Assembly (NCBI GenBank): GCA_004431415.1
Contig: QPMI01000175.1
Coordinates: 68,174-132,173 of the forward strand
Reading direction: 5' to 3'
From: Cyanophora paradoxa CCMP329
Taxonomy: Eukaryota; Plantae; Glaucophyta
Length of the DNA stretch: 64,000 nucleotides
In this document: piece by piece, positions 43,384-60,163 of the stretch
Position numbering within the stretch: the first letter of the stretch is position 1
Layout of the letters: each line of letters opens with the position of its first letter
Notes under the pieces: model-generated
Seen by the model: the letters and a program-made list of their open reading frames with translations, nothing else
Told to the model about the DNA's origin: nothing
The model's database searches: none
Program-made: the position numbers and the translations under genes

Positions 43384-45693
43384 ATGCGCAGGCGCGGCCA
43401 GCGAGCGCCGGCGTCGCGGCAGGCCCTTCTTCCCCCAAGCCGGCAACGGCTGCGGAGGCGGCGAAGAAAGCGGACAGCGGGACGTTCAGGGGCGCGAGCC
43501 CTCGCAGCGCCTCCCCGGCGGCCGGCGTCGCGCCGGCGCCCCGCGCCCCGGCGTTCGTGCCCCTCCTGGAGCCGAAGAACAAGGGCTCCGTCAAGGCGAG
43601 CTTGGGGCGAGCTTGGGGGATGCCCCGAGCCGTCGCCCGCCCCGCGCCCCCGCATCGCGCCCCCTCTGATCGCGCCGCGCGCCCGCGCAGGTTCTCTTGA
43701 GCAACGGCGGGCTGGAGCGTGCGGAGATCAACAAGAGCCAGGCGAGAGGGGCCCGGCGCCGGCGCGGGCGGCGCGGACCCCCGCCGCGGGCCGCGGGCCG
43801 CGGGCAGCCGCTGCCGCAGTGCCGGACTGACGCCGCGCGCCCCGCCCCCCGCAGATCATCCAGGAGCTCCGGAAGCAGGTGAACCTGCGCAACATCGGAC
43901 AGTTCAAGCGCATCTTCATGGGCCTCTCCTGCGTGCGTCAGCGCCCCGTACCCCCGCGCTCGGCCCCCCCCCCCCCCCCCCCCCCCCCCCAACCCCCAAC
44001 CCCAAGTAAACCTCCGGTGCGCAGGGTACGGGGACGTGCCCGAAGGAAGACTTCATCGAAGCTCTGGTCCAGTTCGGAGTCAGCGATCGCGCTCTGGTGA
44101 ACCCGCCCGCTGGCGGGGGTATCCCCAATCGAGCTTACTGGGGGGTGCGAAGTGCTACCGGCTGTTCAAGCTCTTTGATACAAACGGGTCGGGGGACATC
44201 GATTTCGCCGAGGTGCGCGAGCCCCATCGATATCGCAATGTGCCCCCCCCCTCCCGACCCACGCGCTCAGTTCGAGCTCGGAATCGCGCGTACCCTCTGC
44301 GAGCCCTTGGACAGAGTGCTGTTCGGTAACTCTGCCGCCCCCCCGCCGCAAGCTCGCCCTTCCCGTCGAAGAGTGCCGTACCCCCAGAGTACTTCAACGA
44401 CAGGGGCTTGCCCAGCAGAGTCTCCGTGCAGGTGCACCGGGGGCCTTTCCCCTCGCCGGCGCCCTCTTTGCCGGTACCCCTCCTTCTGACGGGTACGCCC
44501 GCAGGAGATCTACAGGATGCTTCTCGACGGCTCCGCCCGCCGCGCCCGCCTCAACCGCGCCGATCTCGACCTTCCGAATGTGTGTACCCCTCGGAAATCC
44601 TGTACCCGTCTCGCTGAGCTCGGTGGTCCCCGCAGGGACAGGGGGCGGCCGGCCCCTCCCAGACGCCGGCGGCCACGCAGCGCGTCCGGATCGAGTCCTT
44701 CAACGGCGTACCCCCGCCCCCCTCGCGCCCCTCGTCCATGCTCCGGCTCCCCACCCAGCCCGCGGCCCAGCGGGCGCCGGGCCCCAAGCCCCTCCCGACG
44801 GCCCGCCCCCCGGCCATCAAGGGCCGCAGCCCGCTCGCGCGGCTCAGGATACGGGTTCGGATCCTCGAGGACCCCCCTTTCCTCCCCGAGCCGCTGACCC
44901 CGGGCGCAGGCCGCGTTCTGGGCGGTGTACGTGCTGAAGGCGTGCGGGGACCGGCAGGGCCGCCTCTCCCGCGACGCGATCGTCATCCGGGCCGTGCGCG
45001 CCGCCCCCGTACCCCCCGCCCCCCCCCCGACCCGCCCGTCGTCCTCACCGTGCCCCCCCGCGCAGGTGGGCGACCGCGTGCTCCGGTTCGTCTTCAAGAA
45101 GGGTATGGGGTGGGAGGTCGACGGCGTCCTGGGAGGGGTACACCCCTCCATTCAGCCCGCCAAACGTTCGCGAGGCTGAGTACCCCCCCCCCCTCCCCCA
45201 GGGCCAGTTGAAGATGGGGGCGGTGGAGGACGAAGAGGACGGCGCCGGGGCCGGCGGCGCGCCTTTCTTCCACGCGCCCCTCCAACTCACCCGCCGCCCC
45301 ATGAGCCTCCGCAAGCCCTCCTGGGGTACCCTCTCCTCGTTTGGCCCCGCCCCCCCCGTCGACCACTCGGCCCGCTCCGGCGGGGTACCCGTCTTCGCCC
45401 TCGCCCGGGGGGACGCCTCGCTCCCCCGGGCCGCCTCCTCCCCCCAGCTGCTGCCCCCCGGCCCCCTCTCCTCCTCCCCCTCTCCCCGGTCGCCGGCGGC
45501 GAGCGCGCGGCAGCCGGCCGCGCTGCGCTCCTCGCGCCTCGCCGCCTCCTCGCTCTCCCTCTCCCTCTCGGCCAGCTCCTCCTTCTCCGCCTCCGCCTCC
45601 GCCTCGCCCTCCCTCCAGGAGCTCTTCTCCGACTACTCCATCACCGGCGCCGACCCCCGCAGGCTCCTCCGCCAGCGCCGCCCCTACCTCTAG
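43384..45693 (+). CDS. EF-hand domain protein (multi-exon; start approximate)
   Basis: CYRLFKLFDTNGSGDIDFAE at ~44152-44212 is a canonical EF loop. The Ser-rich last exon ends at TAG 45693. Confidence 0.7.
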
Positions 45694-46109
45694 CCCTCGC
45701 CCCCCGCCCGCCCCTCCGGCCCCCCGCCTCCGGCCCCCCGCCTCGGCTCTACCTCCAGCCGCCGCCAGCCGCCCCTCCCGGGCCCTCCGCCGCCTCCGAT
45801 ACCAAGCCTCTGCGAATGCGTCTCGGGGCACAGCCCCTCGATCCCAAGGGCCTAACCCCATGAGACGCTCTGATATGGCTCTGTACCTGCATCTTTCCTT
45901 TTTTCCTGGTTAGTGCTTGATGGCTACGCCTGCTAGATTGCGAAGTTACAGGCTCACAGCTAGGTTTCTTTTTGATGTTGGTTGAGCAGTATTGTCACAA
46001 TTTGCTGCTTTCATTTAGCGGGAATAGCGAAAGACGCGTTCGAATTCAACTGGCAATTTCGCTTTTTGTGTTTCTCAGTACCAGCTGATCCACGATGCTA
46101 TTTGAAATT

Positions 46110-48158
46110 TCAGATACAAGGATTCGAGCCCGCTTCTGAGGCGATAGTTACGTCGACGTCCGGGCCTCCGCCTCGCCGCCCACCCCCGGCTCCAGCATCC
46201 ATCGGAAAGGCCGGTGGCGGCCGTACCCCGGCAGCGCCTTTACCTGCGCTGCGTTCGCGTGCGGCGGCGGAGGGCGCGGGCGCGGGGCGCGGGGCACGTG
46301 CCTCGTCGTCGTAGAGGGAGGAGCGGTGGGCGCGGATGAACGGGGGCGCCGGCGCCGCCCCCTCGCCGGCGCGGCCCAGGGCCCCGAGGAGCGACGCCAG
46401 ACGCATGTACGGCAGGTCTGCTCGCGCGCGCCGCGCACGCGTCAGCGGCGCGTCGCGGAAGGAAGCAAGGGGCGGGGCGGGGGCGGGGGCGGCACCGGCG
46501 AGGGAGAGGGCGGTGAGGCGGGGGCCCAGCGCCGCCGCCTCCTCCAGCACCGCCTGCGCCCCCGCGCCGCGGCCCGGGGCGAGAGTCAAGACGAGGCGCA
46601 GTCCGAACGAGCGGGGGAGAGCGGGGCGGGGCGCGCCTGGGCGTGCCCGAGGTACTCGCTGGCGACCAGGCCCTGCAGGGAGGAGTCAGGGGGAGGGCCG
46701 CGGGCCGCGGGACGGGGCGGGAGGAGGGGGCGCGGGGCGGGCGGGCGGGCCTGCTTGGAGAAGCGGAGCTGGGCGAGCTCGAGGGCGGGGCACTCCCGCC
46801 GCACCGCCTCGCTGCACCTGCCGCCCCGCACCCGCCCCCGCCCCCGTCGCCTCCGAGGTCGGGGAGGGGGAGGGGGGGATTGTAGGAGGGCGGGGGCCCG
46901 CGGGCCCGCCGAAGGTGATGGAGTCGAGGTCGAGGGCGCGCAGGTGGCGCCCCACACGCGGCAGCCACCGCCCCGCAAGCTCCTCCGCCCTCACCTGGCC
47001 CCGCGGCTCGCCGGGGTGGCGGGAAGAGAGGGGGGTACCGGTGCACGCCGCACCGAGGCGGCCATGACGCAGATCTCGTCGACGCCGGAGGCGGGGATCG
47101 AGGCCAGCACCGGCTGCGGGGGCACAGGCACCACTGAGCTGGGACATGGAAGGGGGGGGGTACGGGGCCAGCGGACCTCGTGGAGGTCGGGGGGGAGCTC
47201 GCCGATCTCGAGGCGGTGTACCCGGAGGCCGGCGCGGCGCGTCCACGGCAGCTCGCACCTGCCCCGCCCGCCCCGCCGTCAGTCGAGGCCGGGCCGGGCC
47301 GGGCCGGGCCAGGGGCGACGGGCGCGCGCGCGCGCCGACTGACCCGGCGTAGATGCGGGCGCTCCCGAGGGCGCGGAGGCGGGGGTACGCCGACAGCAAG
47401 CGCGCCAGCGGCTGCGGCTTCGCGACGAACTGCGGGAGCGCGGAGTAAGGCGCCGGCCTGGAACGGGCGAGTGCGCATGCGGCGGGGGCGCGCATCGCAG
47501 TGGAGCTCGACGAGGCAGGGTAGGGAGGGCGCCCCGGCGAGGAGGAGGGAGTGGGGCATGGCGACGGCCAGCGCCTCGATGCGGGGGCACAGGGCCGCCA
47601 CCGCCGCCGCCTCCTCCCGCCCCACGCCCATGTCCACCTCCGCCGCCTCTGCCCGCCCGCCCGCCCGCCCGCTCGGGCCGCGCGCGGCGGGGCGCGGGGC
47701 CGCGTCGCGCGCGGAAGGCGCGCACCCGTGAGGACGTCGAGCTCGCTGGCGAAGACGCGGTAGCGGAGGCGGCGGAGCTGCGGGCCGGCGGCCGCGAGGG
47801 CGGCGCGCAGGGCCTCCACGCGGGGCCCCCGCCCGTGCACGTAGCTCGTCACCAGCAGCGAGAGGTCGAGCTCCTCGAGCTCCGCGTGCCGCGGCGCCCG
47901 CAGCGCTCTGCAGAGCGCCTCGAGCGTCGTCGCCCGCGGGACCGTCTTCAGGGACGCCTCGCAGAAGGCGGGCAGCACGATCGCCGCCACGGTGCGGTTC
48001 TGAGGAAGCGAAGGGTCCTGCGCCAGGCCATGCCACGCCCGCGAGACGCGCGCCGCTTGGGCCAAGTCGGGCTTGTGAAGGAGCGCGAAGCAGCGCAGCC
48101 CGAGCTCCGTCGGCAGCTGCGCGAAGCCTGACGCCGCATCGCATTCGACTGAACTCAT
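46110..48158 (-). CDS. F-box / LRR-like protein (multi-exon; 3' end approximate)
   Basis: F-box FAQLPTELGLRCFALLHKPDLAQAARVSRAWHGLAQDPSL followed by LRR-like LEELDLS, LCPRIEALAV, LRALDLD. Confidence 0.82.
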
Positions 48159-54243: not shown

Positions 54244-55771
54244 TGCTGCAAGTGCTGGGAAAGCAGCTGGGAGGTCGGTGTGGCGGCACGTGCAGATGTT
54301 CGATCGCGCAGTGAAGCCGCTGAAGCGCACGGGACCAACCTAGGCCTGGCGGAAGTCCTGGATGATGCGCCGCGGCGCAAACTTGCCAACTTGGCAAGCT
54401 TGAAGTTGGAACTTCGGAAAGATGCACTGGGCTAGCCCACAGTCACTACGGTAGTACAGTACTAGTGCTGCCTAGCAGTGCCTACTATAGGCTAGTACGG
54501 GACAGGTAACCGCTGAGCGGCGGTGACGCCGGTGCCACGGTGAGCGCGCCGCGCGACAGCGAAAACCGGCTCAGGGGCCAGGACGCTTCCAGGACGGCAA
54601 TCGCTTAACTTGGGGGGTAGGCGTACTTATTATGCAAGAACTAGTACTAGTTCTATATATATATCATAACTGCTATGTCGCTTTATTGCGATTCATAAAT
54701 GGAAGTTCTGAACTGTCAATTCGATTCAAATGCATTTAACAACGTTAACAGTTGAACGCGCGCTCCGGTCCGCGTTGCGTCATACTATTTAATAATAAAA
54801 TTAAAGCAGCAAAATCGATTCAGTGTCGGATTCACTGATCGATCCATCGATACAGTAATATGATTCGATATCGATCATCGGCCGCGGATATCGATATCGG
54901 AGGATGCGAATTGCGTCAGATATCTATATATGTCGATTGATTTCCCTGCGCAAACCGACCAATCGAGTTCTGCGCAGACCGACCAATCTTAAAAGCTTAC
55001 TCTGGATCTCGAATCGGTGGGATTCTCTGCCTAAGAAAGCGCTTGCGATTCGTCGGCACCGGAGTCGCAATATTAATAGCGCGCGCTTGTCGATCGCGAA
55101 ACGCGATCGGCCACCGACGGCCAGTGCCGACGGCCACTCGTGCATTGAACCGCCGCGACTCTTGAGTCTTGAGTCTTGACTCTCAAGCTAGAGTCTAGAT
55201 CGATCTTGCAATTGAGTCGTGGAAGTAACTTGGTACCCGGCAAAGGGCCGTCGACGTCATTCGGTTAATTCGAATTATAATTAATTATTCGAATATTCGA
55301 AACCGAACTCGGAATTCGAAGAATTCGAAGGCGGAGGCCTAGGGGCGTCACACACGGCGCCGGCGTGCCACGGACCACGGTGGGGGCCTACTGGCCCAGT
55401 GGGGGGGGGGCATGCGCATGCGCATGCATGCGCATATGCATATATATATGCATGAATCAGCATGCGCAGCATGATGCGCAGAGACGTAATTATTAATTAT
55501 AAGACGCCGGCGGAGGGACGTAAGACGCCGCGTATCAGGGACTAACGTGTGCAACCCCCCCCCCCGGTATACGTCAATTCAAACTCGGCGGCAAATTTTT
55601 GAACATGGCGGCACCGGCGGCACCCGCGGCGGGCTCCGTGCCCGCGGGAGAAATCGAACGTGTCGTGATCCACAGGAAGGGCAGCCCGGATGCGCCGCCT
55701 GTGCATTTCAAGCCGGACATGCTCAACGCCCGCCCCGTTGACGTTGTCCTGCGGCTGCTCAAGACGACTGT

Positions 55772-56012
55772 GTGGAGCTCGACGAGGCAGGGTAGGGAGG
55801 GCGCCCCGGCGAGGAGGAGGGAGTGGGGCATGGCGACGGCCAGCGCCTCGATGCGGGGGCACAGGGCCGCCACCGCCGCCGCCTCCTCCCGCCCCACGCC
55901 CATGTCCACCTCCGCCGCCTCTGCCCGCCCGCCCGCCCGCCCGCTCGGGCCGCGCGCGGCGGGGCGCGGGGCCGCGTCGCGCGCGGAAGGCGCGCACCCG
56001 TGAGGACGTCGA
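55772..56012 (+). repeat. 241-bp copy of F-box gene segment 47500-47740 (exon-intron-exon)
   Basis: No mismatches seen by eye from gtggagctcgacg to gaggacgtcga. Confidence 0.95.
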
Positions 56013-56013
56013 A

Positions 56014-56275
56014 GGCCCCCTCTCCTCCTCCCCCTCTCCCCGGTCGCCGGCGGCGAGCGCGCGGCAGCCGGCCGCGCTGCGCTCCTCGCGCCTCGCCGCC
56101 TCCTCGCTCTCCCTCTCCCTCTCGGCCAGCTCCTCCTTCTCCGCCTCCGCCTCCGCCTCGCCCTCCCTCCAGGAGCTCTTCTCCGACTACTCCATCACCG
56201 GCGCCGACCCCCGCAGGCTCCTCCGCCAGCGCCGCCCCTACCTCTAGCCCTCGCCCCCCGCCCGCCCCTCCGGCC
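56014..56275 (+). repeat. 262-bp copy of EF-hand gene 3' end 45460-45721
   Basis: No mismatches seen by eye from ggccccctctcctcc to cccctccggcc. Confidence 0.95.
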
Positions 56276-56324
56276 TCCCCCTCCGGCGCGGCGGTGCGGC
56301 ACGGGCGGCGTGGCGGCGCGGACC

Positions 56325-56718
56325 CGTAGAAGGTCGAGCGGTGGATGGACCTGCGCTTTTTCGCGAACTCGCCCAGGCGAACGTTGCGTCCCGTCGGATC
56401 CAGCTCCGCGAGGGCGTGCTGAATCCTAGACTTCGCCACAGTGATGCCCGCGGCCCTGAGCGCCCCGCGGATCGCGTCGTAGCCGTATCCGTCGCCGCAC
56501 AAAGTCGCCGCTTCTTCTACGACATCGTAAACTGCCTCCTTTGAGAGAGAGTAGTCCGTCGAGAGGTCGAGGTCGCTGAGCTTGTAGCGCAGGGCGCGCA
56601 TCGAAATCTGGATTTGGTGCTCCTCGTGCAGCAGAGCCACGATCTCCCTCGCCTTTCTCTTCTGAGCCACATACTCCTCCAGAATCTCCGGGTCGATGTA
56701 AATCTCGAAGCCGCTCAT
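56325..56718 (-). pseudogene. N-terminal (Clr5/HTH-like) part of an IS3EU/integrase-type transposase; DDE core missing
   Basis: IVALLHEEHQIQISMRALRYKL...GYGYDAIRGALRAAGITVAKSRIQHALAELDPTG..R..KRR resembles the region preceding the catalytic core of eukaryotic IS3-like transposases. Confidence 0.7.
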
Positions 56719-57493
56719 TGCGAGGCGAACCGCAATGAGCGCCCGCAGCTCCGTGCACTAGGCTATCGCTGTTTTGGCCGGCTGGGGCGGCTCTCCGGCG
56801 GTCTGCCGCCGGCTGTTCCCGCGGTCGAAAAATTCACTGCACCCCCCCTCCCTTGACGCTGTCGTCAAAACCGAGTGCTGGGCCGCGTCGGGCGCGCGCA
56901 GCATCTTCAGCGACCTAGCATCGCATCCGTGGTAGGTTTGAGCGCTGCCGGCATGCATCTGAGTGCCCGAGCTGGCGCCCGCACGCTCGACGGGCGCGCG
57001 TCCAGGGCAGCGCGCGCGCAGCCCGCCCGGCCACACGAACCACTTGTATGTATGATACAAAGACCTCTTACGCTACTAGCTCGCCGGCGCCGCGCCCCGG
57101 GCTCCTGTTCACTATGCCAGGATCGGCTGCCAGGGACTGCCTGCCTGGCCGCTGCCATGCCCGGTGCATGTGCCTACGTATTTGTTCCACCAAGGAGCGC
57201 CCCGCTCGCCGCCCCCTGCCTTGCACCATGACCATATACAACAATCCCTCCGGGAATTGAAGCAAATGCTCCTGGGGGGGGTGCACACCAAGGGCCCTGA
57301 CAGCCGCGCCGGCGCCTCGCCTTAATTATAATTATTTATATCAACGTGTTTGCAATATTAATTGCGCACGCAATTGCGCAGGTACCGGTGCACGTGCACT
57401 CGGATCTAGATCTAGATCGCGGTCGATAGAGCTCGAGATCGCTCGCTCAGCTGCAGCAGAGCAGCTATAGCTAGAGTCGCGCTTCAGCTGGGT

Positions 57494-60163
57494 CTAGAAG
57501 CAGAAGTACTGGTCCGCTCTGAAACCACGCCTCTGCACGCCAAAGACGTTCGGGGGCGGGGGCGGGGCGTCGACGTCGGTGGCCGCTCGGTTCATCGCAG
57601 CGCGGAGGGGCACCGTACCTGGAGGGCGGGTATGCAGGCGCCCTGGAGCATGGGCGGCGGGCCGCACATGAACACCAGCGCCTCCTCCGCCGGGCCCGGC
57701 AGGTGCTCCCTGCCCCCTCACGCAACCCGGCGTCAGAAGGGGAGGGGCGGAACGGGGGGAGGCCCAGGGGCCGAAGCTAGGGGCCGCCGGGCGGAGTATG
57801 AATGGGAAGGGCACCGGATCATGTCCTCCGTGACGAAGCCGACGCTGTAGGGCCATGCTCGCGACTCGGCCGGCTGCGCCCCGCCTGCGATCAGCCGGCG
57901 GGGCGGGGCCTTGCGGGCAGCCCGCAGCTGGCAGGGGCGGCACCCGGGCGCCGCAGTAGGGGCTCACGCTGAACGCCGGTGGCGCCGGCGCCTGCGGCCG
58001 CCCTCAAGCGTCAAACGAAAGGAGACTGGAGAAGGGGCGGGGCGGGGCGGGGCGGGCCCGGTCGACGGTGAGGTGGAGGCGGAGGCGGGCGGGGTGCGCG
58101 TGGGCGAGGGACTCCAGCTCCGCGCGCAGCAGCACCTCCTCCACGCTCTGCCCCCGGGCGAGGTCGGCAGGTCCGAGGAATGCGGGCCGGGAGGGGGGGA
58201 AGGTAGCGGGGCGGCACCTGGTTTGCGAAGAGCACGGAGACCTCGGTGGGGTCCGAGGGGTCCGCCAGCATCGCCCGCACCACCTGCCATCGCCCGTGCA
58301 GAGTCGGCAGCCGCGCGTCAGGGTCGGGGGCGGCCGGGGGGCCGGCACCTGGTAGACGGGCGTGATGCCGGAGCCGCCGGCGATCATCCCCACGCGCCGC
58401 GCCCGCCGCCGCACGCCTTTCACGTCGAACTCGCCTGCGCGGCCGCCGAGGCCGCGGCGTCGGGCCCCGCGGCGGCCCTGCGGCCCGGGGAGGGGCGCGC
58501 GCGCACCCCGCCCCCGGTAGATAATCGAGCCGAAGGGGCCCAGTACGTCCACGGTACCCCCCAAGGGTAGGCCCTCCAGGTGCTGGCGGCCACCTCGGTC
58601 CAGGACGGGGCGGGGGGGGGGGGGAGCTCGAGGGGTACGCGCGCCTGGGTGAAGGCTCCGCCCTCCGGGAACTTCGGGTGCTCGTTCGCAAAGTAGACCT
58701 TCGGGAGTACCGGGGTTGGATCGGGGGGGGGGGGGGTACGCGGGCGACGGCGGACCTTGACGACGAGGTCGAAGTACCCCCGGACCTCGTCGGCGGTGAC
58801 GGGCGTGTAGGCGCGCATGACGTGCCTGCGGCAGGGCGCGCTCGCTCAGCCCCCCGGGGGGTACGGGGTGCGGGAGAGCGCGCCGGCCGGCGACTTCAGC
58901 GGAGAGGAGGACGTGCTGCCCCACGGGGAGGCCCAGCACGTGCTCCCCGCTGGGCAGCCCGAAGCGGAGCCTGCCCGCGAGGGGGCCTCGGGCGGGGCGG
59001 GTCAGACGGGAGGCCGGCGCGGCGCACCGCCTCGTGTTGCGGGTCAGGTTCTCCCTCTCGAGGAGCCGAACCGCGACCTTGTGCCTGGGATCCAGCGTCA
59101 CGGGCGGGCCGCCCGACGCCTCGGCGGCAGCCGCTGCCGCCGCGGCCGGTGCGGCGCCGGCCGCTGGAGATGGTGAGACCCGCGGACGGCGGAAAAGGAT
59201 GGGGGAGGGGGACGGGCAGGGGCGGGGGTACCCCGAATCCAGCTCGGAGGCGAGACGCATCGGCTGTTGGGCACGAAGTCGCCGTCCACGTCGCCGATGT
59301 ACCTGCGGTTCCGGTACCCCAACTCGCCCGGGGGTACACGAGCAGACGCTGGGCGGGGCGGGGCGGCGGCGCGCCAGTCCGCAAGGGAGGCCTTGGTCTC
59401 GGGCTTGTGAATGGCTTCGAAGTCCTCCGTGGACTCGCCGCCTGCAGGCCGTCGCGGTGGGTACGGTGTAAGGCGCGGAGGCGGGGGTACTGGGGCACCG
59501 GCGTTGACGGTGATCGCCTCGCCGCCGGGGTGGTCCTTCACAAAGCCCGTGACGTCGTAGACCTTCCCCGGGGGTGAGCGCGGGGCGCGGGCGGAACGGG
59601 CGGCCGCCGCGGCGGGCTCGCCTTGCCGTGTATCACGAGCCAGAGATCCGTGGGGGAGTTGTGCTTGGCCACCTGGGCGGCGCACCCAGATCAGGCGAGC
59701 GCGAAGCGCGGCCCCGGTCTGCATCTGGGGTCGGGTTGAACGGCTCGCGCCTCTTCCAGGGTGAGCTTTCCAGCGGCTGCCGCAGCGAAACTCCGGCGCC
59801 AAACTGGCGCAAGGGGCGCGTACGCGTGCGGGCGCGGGGCGGTCTGCTGGGCGTGTCAGCGCCTCCAGCCGAGCACCTTCCGCTCGCGTCCGGACCGTAT
59901 GGATTAAGGAGATCGAGCACGCCCGAAGCTTAAGCTCGAGCCGGGCAGCTGCAGGCGACCCCGAGCCCTGAGAACCAGCGCTGGCGTCATCTCTCTCGCT
60001 CCGACGTGCCCGGCCGACGCGTACGCGTGCGCACCAGCGGTATGCTCTGCGCATGCGAGCTCCCGGCGAGCTGCCGAACAACTGAAACCGCGGCTGCCCG
60101 CCCGCCAAGCGGGCCGCTCGAACGCAGCGCCATGCGGGCGAGCAGCCTACCGTTCAGAGCCAT
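57494..60163 (-). CDS. Cytochrome b5 - NADH:cytochrome b5 reductase fusion (nitrate-reductase C-half-like; multi-exon) with a putative organellar presequence
   Basis: b5 domain [36 protein letters not shown]...[11 protein letters not shown] domain [26 protein letters not shown] domain [23 protein letters not shown]. Ends ...QYFCF*. Confidence 0.88.

Follow-up and report, generated by a model that had tools for sequence, protein, structure and literature searches.

Fragments of two neighbouring genes inside an IS3EU/GingerRoot-like transposable element of Cyanophora paradoxa

Introduction

Internally deleted derivatives of the Ac/Ds, P and Mu elements, with filler DNA left by abortive gap repair, were reportedly described by Rubin and Levy in 1997 and by Engels et al. 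in 1994. Two further known systems close to the locus treated here are the GingerRoot elements of Selaginella lepidophylla, among which 22 of 77 carry host gene fragments and have then mostly lost the DDE region (Cerbin et al. 2019, PMC6839031), and the single-copy Pack-TIRs of animals, 57% of which have a donor less than 15 kb away in cis, with a median microhomology of 2 bp (Tan et al. 2021, PMC8277862). Here we describe a 1,770-bp element with terminal inverted repeats (TIRs), at positions 55533-57302 of a 64-kb stretch of Cyanophora paradoxa DNA (the whole of which we call the window), whose interior has been replaced by pieces of two genes lying in the same stretch.

GingerRoot and IS3EU form one lineage with 99% bootstrap support (Kojima 2023, PMC10045372). 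IS3EU elements make target-site duplications (TSDs) of 6 bp and always have TA..TA ends (PMC10045372). The TSDs of GingerRoot are also 6 bp long and GC-rich, and its ends are mostly TA..TA and at times TG..CA (PMC10045372, PMC6839031). Fungal TIRs are longer than 30 bp (PMC12730594). In the passages of the Styx report drawn on here, this active IS3EU element of Zymoseptoria tritici moves with its donor copy restored, which the authors attribute to host repair (PMC10853768).

Results

Structure of the element

The element has an identical hexamer, GCCGCG, on both sides and imperfect TIRs of 29 nt, of which 22 positions agree. An earlier note on this DNA, made from the sequence, had drawn the same outline with a 6-bp TSD and TIRs. 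Between two arms of a transposon family lie exact copies of 241 bp of an F-box gene and of 262 bp from the 3' end of a second gene. Both are direct repeats of their donors with genomic orientation kept, and over 503 bp there is not a single difference between copies and donors. The donors lie in cis, 8,272 bp (F-box gene) and 10,554 bp (second gene) away from their copies. These observations support a non-autonomous TIR element with host-gene cargo and intact ends. Its parts and the two donors are as follows.

55527-55532: left TSD, GCCGCG, identical to the hexamer at the other flank
55533-55561, plus strand: left TIR, beginning with TA; 22/29 identity with the reverse complement of 57274-57302
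55533-55773, plus strand: left arm of the family element; its final GT is common to donor 1
55605-55772, plus strand: opening 56 codons of the second element gene (the left gene), 100% identical to the N-terminus of gene models P0019-P0023
55772-56012, plus strand: F-box gene DNA, exact 241-bp copy of 47500-47740 (repeat search)
55921-55997, minus strand: intron of the F-box gene, kept in the copy (donor 47649-47725)
56013: untemplated A between the two captured fragments (joint 2, without overlap)
56014-56275, plus strand: 3' end of the second gene, exact 262-bp copy of 45460-45721 (repeat search)
56276-56283, plus strand: 8-nt insert TCCCCCTC, probably templated; neither joint partner supplies these bases
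56284-57302, minus strand: right arm of the family element, matched by family contigs from 56284 rightwards
56284-56322, minus strand: initial 39 nt of transposase intron 1, up to the right deletion breakpoint (GT at 56322-21; RNA and family contigs)
56323-56718, minus strand: transposase exon 1, 132 codons, helix-turn-helix (HTH) region only, 100% identical to P0002 residues 1-132
57274-57302, minus strand: right TIR, terminating in CA, pairing with the left TIR
57303-57308: right TSD, GCCGCG, identical to the hexamer at the left flank
47500-47740, minus strand: donor 1, inside the F-box gene (exact repeat; F-box-like domain in the gene)
45460-45721, plus strand: donor 2, 3' end of a plus-strand gene (exact repeat)

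The two donor intervals, the single extra A that joins the fragments and their genomic orientation are as the earlier note gave them. Its pair of element open reading frames needs one correction: the minus-strand transposase does begin at 56718, and the ATG of the left frame is at 55605, not 55606.

By chance the core pattern of the TIRs would be expected 0.03 times in the 64 kb; it occurs at the two ends of the element and nowhere else. The right terminus is fixed at 57302 because a 59-nt contig (depth 824) stops exactly there and because, beyond this position, RNA contigs from diverged copies of the family carry other flanks. The terminal CA is the family's own, since the multi-copy 59-nt contig is identical at this end. 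The transposase of the 1,770-bp copy has lost its catalytic core and keeps exon 1 alone.

Donor genes and level of capture

A complete 77-nt intron lies in the F-box fragment, between 15 nt from one exon and 149 nt from the following one. Its donor is a minus-strand gene with an F-box-like domain in the upstream exon, 47727-48158 (Pfam, E = 8.7e-10). In mRNA contigs from RNA runs X15 and X20, position 47648 is joined to 47726, which corresponds to a 77-nt GT-AG intron on the minus strand, and these contigs extend on both sides of the intron in the donor's own context. Because the intron is kept in the copy yet spliced from the donor mRNA, capture took place at the DNA level and not via mRNA. 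That the intron was retained had been read correctly in the earlier note.

The fragment of the second gene consists of the final 77 codons with their stop codon, followed by 28 nt from the 3' untranslated region. The repeat search stretches this match to 266 nt by crossing one mismatch; the exact part is 262 nt. An EF-hand motif, just under the Pfam threshold, lies about 1.2 kb upstream of the donor on the same strand and is a candidate part of the same gene.

Short repeats bracket both donors. Around donor 1 there is a perfect 10-nt inverted repeat (47503-47512 and 47735-47744), and 0.3% of random local segments do as well (P ~0.003, local resampling; one of four looks); the copied F-box segment ends 6 nt into the right arm of this repeat. 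Around donor 2 lies a direct repeat of 9 nt (45458-45466 and 45717-45725), which 1.4% of segments equal (P ~0.014 by the same resampling, again one of four looks). These repeats may be points at which repair synthesis started or stopped.

The joints

Family sequence and donor 1 have two nucleotides, GT, in common at joint 1; at joint 2 the extra A stands between the fragments. Joint 3 is more complex. The insert TCCCCCTC and the two C before it make up a 10-mer with just three occurrences in the window, at 45473, 56027 and 56274, so that the sequence at joint 3 is an exact copy of 45473-82 or 56027-36 with an overlap of two nucleotides, CC. Judged from this match, the octamer is probably a short templated insertion, copied from the donor-2 fragment that had just been made. 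The last join resembles a product of alternative end joining. The earlier note had pointed to the repeated cccctccggc as a candidate microhomology at the junction. This does not hold, as the motif is present twice and has not been consumed in annealing; it is part of the templated insertion.

Support from sequencing reads

We compared the window with 14 DNA runs of 2024, each a separate study, every one of which holds 90-92% of the stretch's sampled words. Contigs of two of them (X1 and X2) and of the two RNA runs were aligned to the window. Single-copy flanks are covered by contigs of depth 57-132. The joint between the two captured fragments is crossed by a 61-nt contig (55983-56043), at depth 68 in X1 and 86 in X2, which represents exactly all the 31-mers containing the extra A. 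The cargo joint is therefore present in about single copy. Both joints between flank and TIR are also found in contigs (left, 54900-55561; right, 57277-57900).

About 8% of the sampled words are absent from every DNA run. At the C-run that ends at 56841, every read contig has one C more than the window, which is probably a homopolymer error in the assembly. Most of the absent words may be due to homopolymer breaks at 55555-65, 56841 and 57275-82. Beside the left TIR, a run of 11 C (55555-55565) differs by one C among contigs.

The parent family

In X1 and X2, positions 55555-55773 are matched by a 6,273-nt contig with a depth of about 465 (about 6 copies), whose remaining ~6.05 kb are unlike the window. 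On the other side, two contigs, 2,514 and 3,053 nt long (depth 449-510), agree with the window to the right of and including 56284; leftwards of it they have at least 2.06 kb of different sequence. The breakpoints of the interior deletion are 55773 and 56284. Deriving them from the family had been proposed in the earlier note; the contigs do diverge at these two positions. From the lengths of the diverging contigs, the parent would measure at least about 9.3 kb provided that none of their sequence is shared, and the copy here would lack at least 8 kb. The arms of the 1,770-bp copy show no substitution relative to the family contigs. A count of gene models gives about 6 loci per arm, in line with the depth ratios. 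Over the final ~500 nt of the right arm (56767-57273) the depth is about double that of the transposase exon.

The two genes of the family are convergent and start from opposite ends of the element. For the transposase, RNA contigs of depth 420-500 extend over exon 1 and are spliced, at 56323, to sequence coding for KFFGWSVGFD, as in P0002; this splice site places the right breakpoint 39 nt into intron 1. The same transposase is present in Cyanophora models P0002, P0017 and P0018. Models P0017 (527 amino acids) and P0018 (499 amino acids) are full length, with the Pfam rva_4 integrase core above the gathering score; P0002, P0016 and P0017 score 27-29 bits with rva_4, for which the cut-off is 26. 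At the N-terminus the protein is HTH-like, has a single Cys and matches Clr5 and HTH_21 weakly; a transposase of IS3EU/GingerRoot would be expected to be of the DDD/E, IS3/integrase type and to have no HHCC zinc finger. All neighbours of the transposase in a protein language-model comparison are eukaryotic rva_4 clusters, chiefly from Basidiomycota and Chordata. Two distant kin with the same N-terminus, P0007 and P0012, match the NCBIfam IS3 transposase model (E ~4e-5), and P0017 itself has no match in NCBIfam. A word search with P0017 returned Cyanophora models only, and a sequence search of the PDB gave no match.

The left gene (P0022) matches no Pfam family. Its RNA contigs run beyond 55773, as models P0019-P0023 predict. 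In P0020 (tig00020848_g14542) and P0019 (tig00000881_g5227) the left gene is joined straight to right-arm sequence, after about residue 87 and about residue 144, respectively; the joined parts match the window at 56512-56541 and 56972-57052. This suggests that P0020 and P0019 represent further internal-deletion derivatives of the family.

The family is young and transcribed. RNA contigs (X15, X20) with 5-10 differences cover 56877-57302 and continue into other flanks; diverged copies are also transcribed or read through. Another model, P0004 (tig00000215_g18610, 673 amino acids), contains an HTH region 46% identical to the transposase N-terminus at residues 474-591, after a long unrelated N-terminal half; it could represent either another transposon family akin to this one or a copy that was domesticated or fused. 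A 975-nt contig (L001, with P0003) turned out to belong to a different though related family and was not used.

As to the superfamily, the termini TA...CA combine one end of each of the known types, and the TSD GCCGCG is, with its 6 bp and high GC content, of the kind that GingerRoot prefers. The integrase-type DDE transposase, the 6-bp TSD and the TA...CA ends fit a tentative assignment to IS3EU/GingerRoot. An IS3EU-like family was also the reading of the earlier note, and the TSD length and the rva_4 core are consistent with it.

A chimeric gene model, and the surroundings of the element

Proteins encoded in the window match EukProt EP00741 models exactly. The published model tig00000743_g3882.t1 (P0001; EukProt EP00741_P003996, 336 amino acids) covers 55577-56718 on the minus strand and is a chimera of three parts: (i) transposase exon 1 with read-through, 56718-56242; (ii) the antisense of the donor-2 DNA, 56186-55998; and (iii) F-box DNA spliced at the sites of the captured intron plus the antisense of the left gene, 55918-55577. 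RNA contigs over any of the three joints are absent among the pieces listed, and a contig search for P0002, P0017 or a 319-amino-acid open reading frame across all three joints found no encoding contig. The model should not be counted as a host protein unless RNA evidence supports it.

To the right of the element lies a minus-strand gene (57348-60108) with Cyt-b5, FAD_binding_6 and NAD_binding_1 pieces, which resembles a cytochrome b5 reductase fusion. Its RNA contig has introns at about 57533-57618 and 57709-57813 and ends about 45 nt from the element, which places the insertion just past the 3' end of this gene. An AT-rich 15-nt motif, TTATAATTAATTATT, is found at 55275-55289, 55488-55502 (inverted) and 57326-57340 and nowhere else in the window (0 expected). 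We considered whether the element might be nested in another TIR element and dropped the idea, as this motif has only three local occurrences. Palindromic simple repeats of the GCATGC type are present at 55410-55470.

Discussion

How the element may have formed

We think it likely that the element was made by break repair in place, with serial template switches to neighbouring DNA. The course of events would have been as follows. A full-length IS3EU/GingerRoot-like member of about 9 kb or longer would have been resident here, between the GCCGCG duplications. A double-strand gap or break would then have deleted the interior from 55773 to 56284, and with it the left gene past codon 56 and the transposase past the first 39 nt of intron 1. 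In the first switch, primed by the GT overlap, 241 nt would have been copied from the F-box gene 8.3 kb off. In the second, after addition of one untemplated A, 262 nt would have been copied from the gene 3' end 10.6 kb off. In the third, repair would have switched back via the CC overlap, copied 8 nt from the donor-2 fragment and joined the right arm. The outcome would be a 1.77-kb non-autonomous element with both ends intact. We infer the formation at the present site from the proximity of the donors; in which order the switches took place, and what kind of break it was, is likewise our inference. Nothing in the data suggests movement after capture, as the cargo joint is about single copy and the donors are adjacent. 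The earlier note's view that the capture was caught before divergence or re-mobilisation agrees well with such a joint and with the absence of differences over 503 bp.

What opened the gap is a separate question. The earlier note proposed abortive gap repair after excision. The gap-repair part fits the donors in cis and the joints with their signatures of template switching; excision may or may not have caused the gap, for a break or stalled fork gives the same product. For single-copy cases in animals, breaks independent of transposition are the favoured route (Tan et al. 2021, PMC8277862). Of two routes, excision by the transposase with an abortive repair from the sister chromatid and a break or stalled fork that did not involve the transposase, we slightly prefer the first, given that the family is active and apparently yields other deletion derivatives. 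A bolder and rather doubtful idea is that the locus is a natural footprint of double-strand-gap repair after excision, that eukaryotic IS3EU/GingerRoot elements accordingly move by cut-and-paste with refilling from the sister chromatid, in contrast to the copy-out, paste-in movement of bacterial IS3, and that the 10-nt inverted repeat at donor 1 marks where synthesis ended on a folded nascent strand. The other apparent deletion derivatives of the family would agree with this idea.

Several points weigh against repair in place, or against its excision variant. Bacterial IS3 elements copy out and leave no gap. The identity of the products of excision-induced repair and of a spontaneous break or stalled fork tells against the excision variant in particular. 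Neither a full-length element nor an empty site was seen at this position in any strain, and the argument for an origin in situ is the proximity of the donors. Finally, the outer joints (55771/72 and 56275-84) are crossed by no contig among the pieces listed, and the long-read assembly is what backs them. The chimeric assembly that the earlier note named as a refutation is countered by contigs at the central joint and at the flank-to-TIR joints.

Alternatively, the capture could have occurred in a copy elsewhere, presumably near both genes, and the finished 1.77-kb element could then have transposed to its present position and made the TSD there. We regard such a Pack-type mobilisation as unlikely. 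In its favour, the TIRs and the TSD are intact and the family transposase is highly represented in RNA contigs; the passages of the Styx report cited here also describe local reinsertion, with 44% of same-chromosome insertions falling within 150 kb of the parent (PMC10853768). However, the cargo joint has about single-copy depth, the 64-kb window contains no further family end, and an arrival 8-10 kb from both donors needs an extra short hop, which is less parsimonious than an origin in place.

An assembly artefact, in which a real joint of F-box DNA, A and second gene had been misplaced inside a collapsed or mis-joined element copy, seems to us slightly more improbable still. It could draw on the missing outer-joint contigs among the pieces listed, on the ~8% of sampled words that all DNA runs lack and on the presence of at least one homopolymer error (56841) in the window. 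Yet the central joint appears at single-copy depth in two independent read sets, both flank-to-TIR joints are found in contigs, and homopolymer breaks may explain most of the absent words; the joint would moreover require another genomic home, and the locus another interior. As for capture through RNA, or a reverse transfer from the element into the genes, we give these almost no credence. The former conflicts with the 77-nt intron that is present in the copy and absent from donor mRNA. The latter conflicts with family contigs that lack both fragments and diverge exactly at the breakpoints, and with the collinearity of the fragments with spliced, transcribed donor genes, one of them with an F-box domain.

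Comparison with known systems

As in the derivatives of Ac/Ds, P and Mu, the ends are kept, the middle is lost, filler comes from nearby sequence and the joints show microhomology or a few added bases. The filler in those derivatives is said to be usually short or derived from the element, whereas here it amounts to 504 bp from two genes.

Like the Cyanophora family, Styx, as described in the passages used here, makes a 6-bp TSD, has TIRs and several genes, codes for an integrase-type transposase and has gone through a recent burst; it differs in being fungal and in its 36-bp, well-conserved TIRs, and those passages report no host-gene filler (PMC10853768). Compared with the fungal TIRs of more than 30 bp, the TIR in Cyanophora is shorter and less perfect (PMC12730594). 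Pack-MULE and Pack-CACTA elements are likewise non-autonomous and bounded by TIRs, and they bring together pieces, with introns, from two or more genes (PMC6379663, PMC8903248). They belong to other superfamilies, with TSDs of 9 bp or 3 bp, and many are multicopy and mobile, while no movement after capture is seen here.

The pattern is that typical of the single-copy Pack-TIRs of animals (PMC8277862), in which there is also one copy, a cis donor less than 15 kb away, a microhomology of 1-2 bp or a short de novo insertion at the joints, and a transposon interior replaced by filler. That set comes from animals, its text does not mention IS3EU and its transposons are mostly inactive, whereas the Cyanophora family is transcribed and its copies are near-identical. 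GingerRoot (PMC6839031) resembles the element in its integrase-related DDE transposase, its 6-bp GC-rich TSD and its TIRs with TA or TG termini. The GingerRoot parents measure about 8.6-8.9 kb, against at least 9 kb here; their captured fragments are 79-98% identical to the parent genes and the elements older than those free of cargo, against 100% identity here; and linkage of the donors is not stressed in that study, whereas in this glaucophyte host both donors lie 8-10 kb away.

The novelty implied by the earlier note does not stand, since capture of gene fragments is known for GingerRoot, in the lineage of IS3EU (PMC6839031, PMC10045372). Both the phenomenon and the proposed mechanism are already known; the specimen stands out only in being so fresh, in having two linked donors and in the lineage of its host. 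With zero divergence, donors on the same 64-kb stretch, three readable template switches and a transcribed parent family, it comes near to being caught in the act. Its host is a glaucophyte, from a lineage in which transposons have received very little study, and it offers a handle on how IS3EU/GingerRoot elements move.

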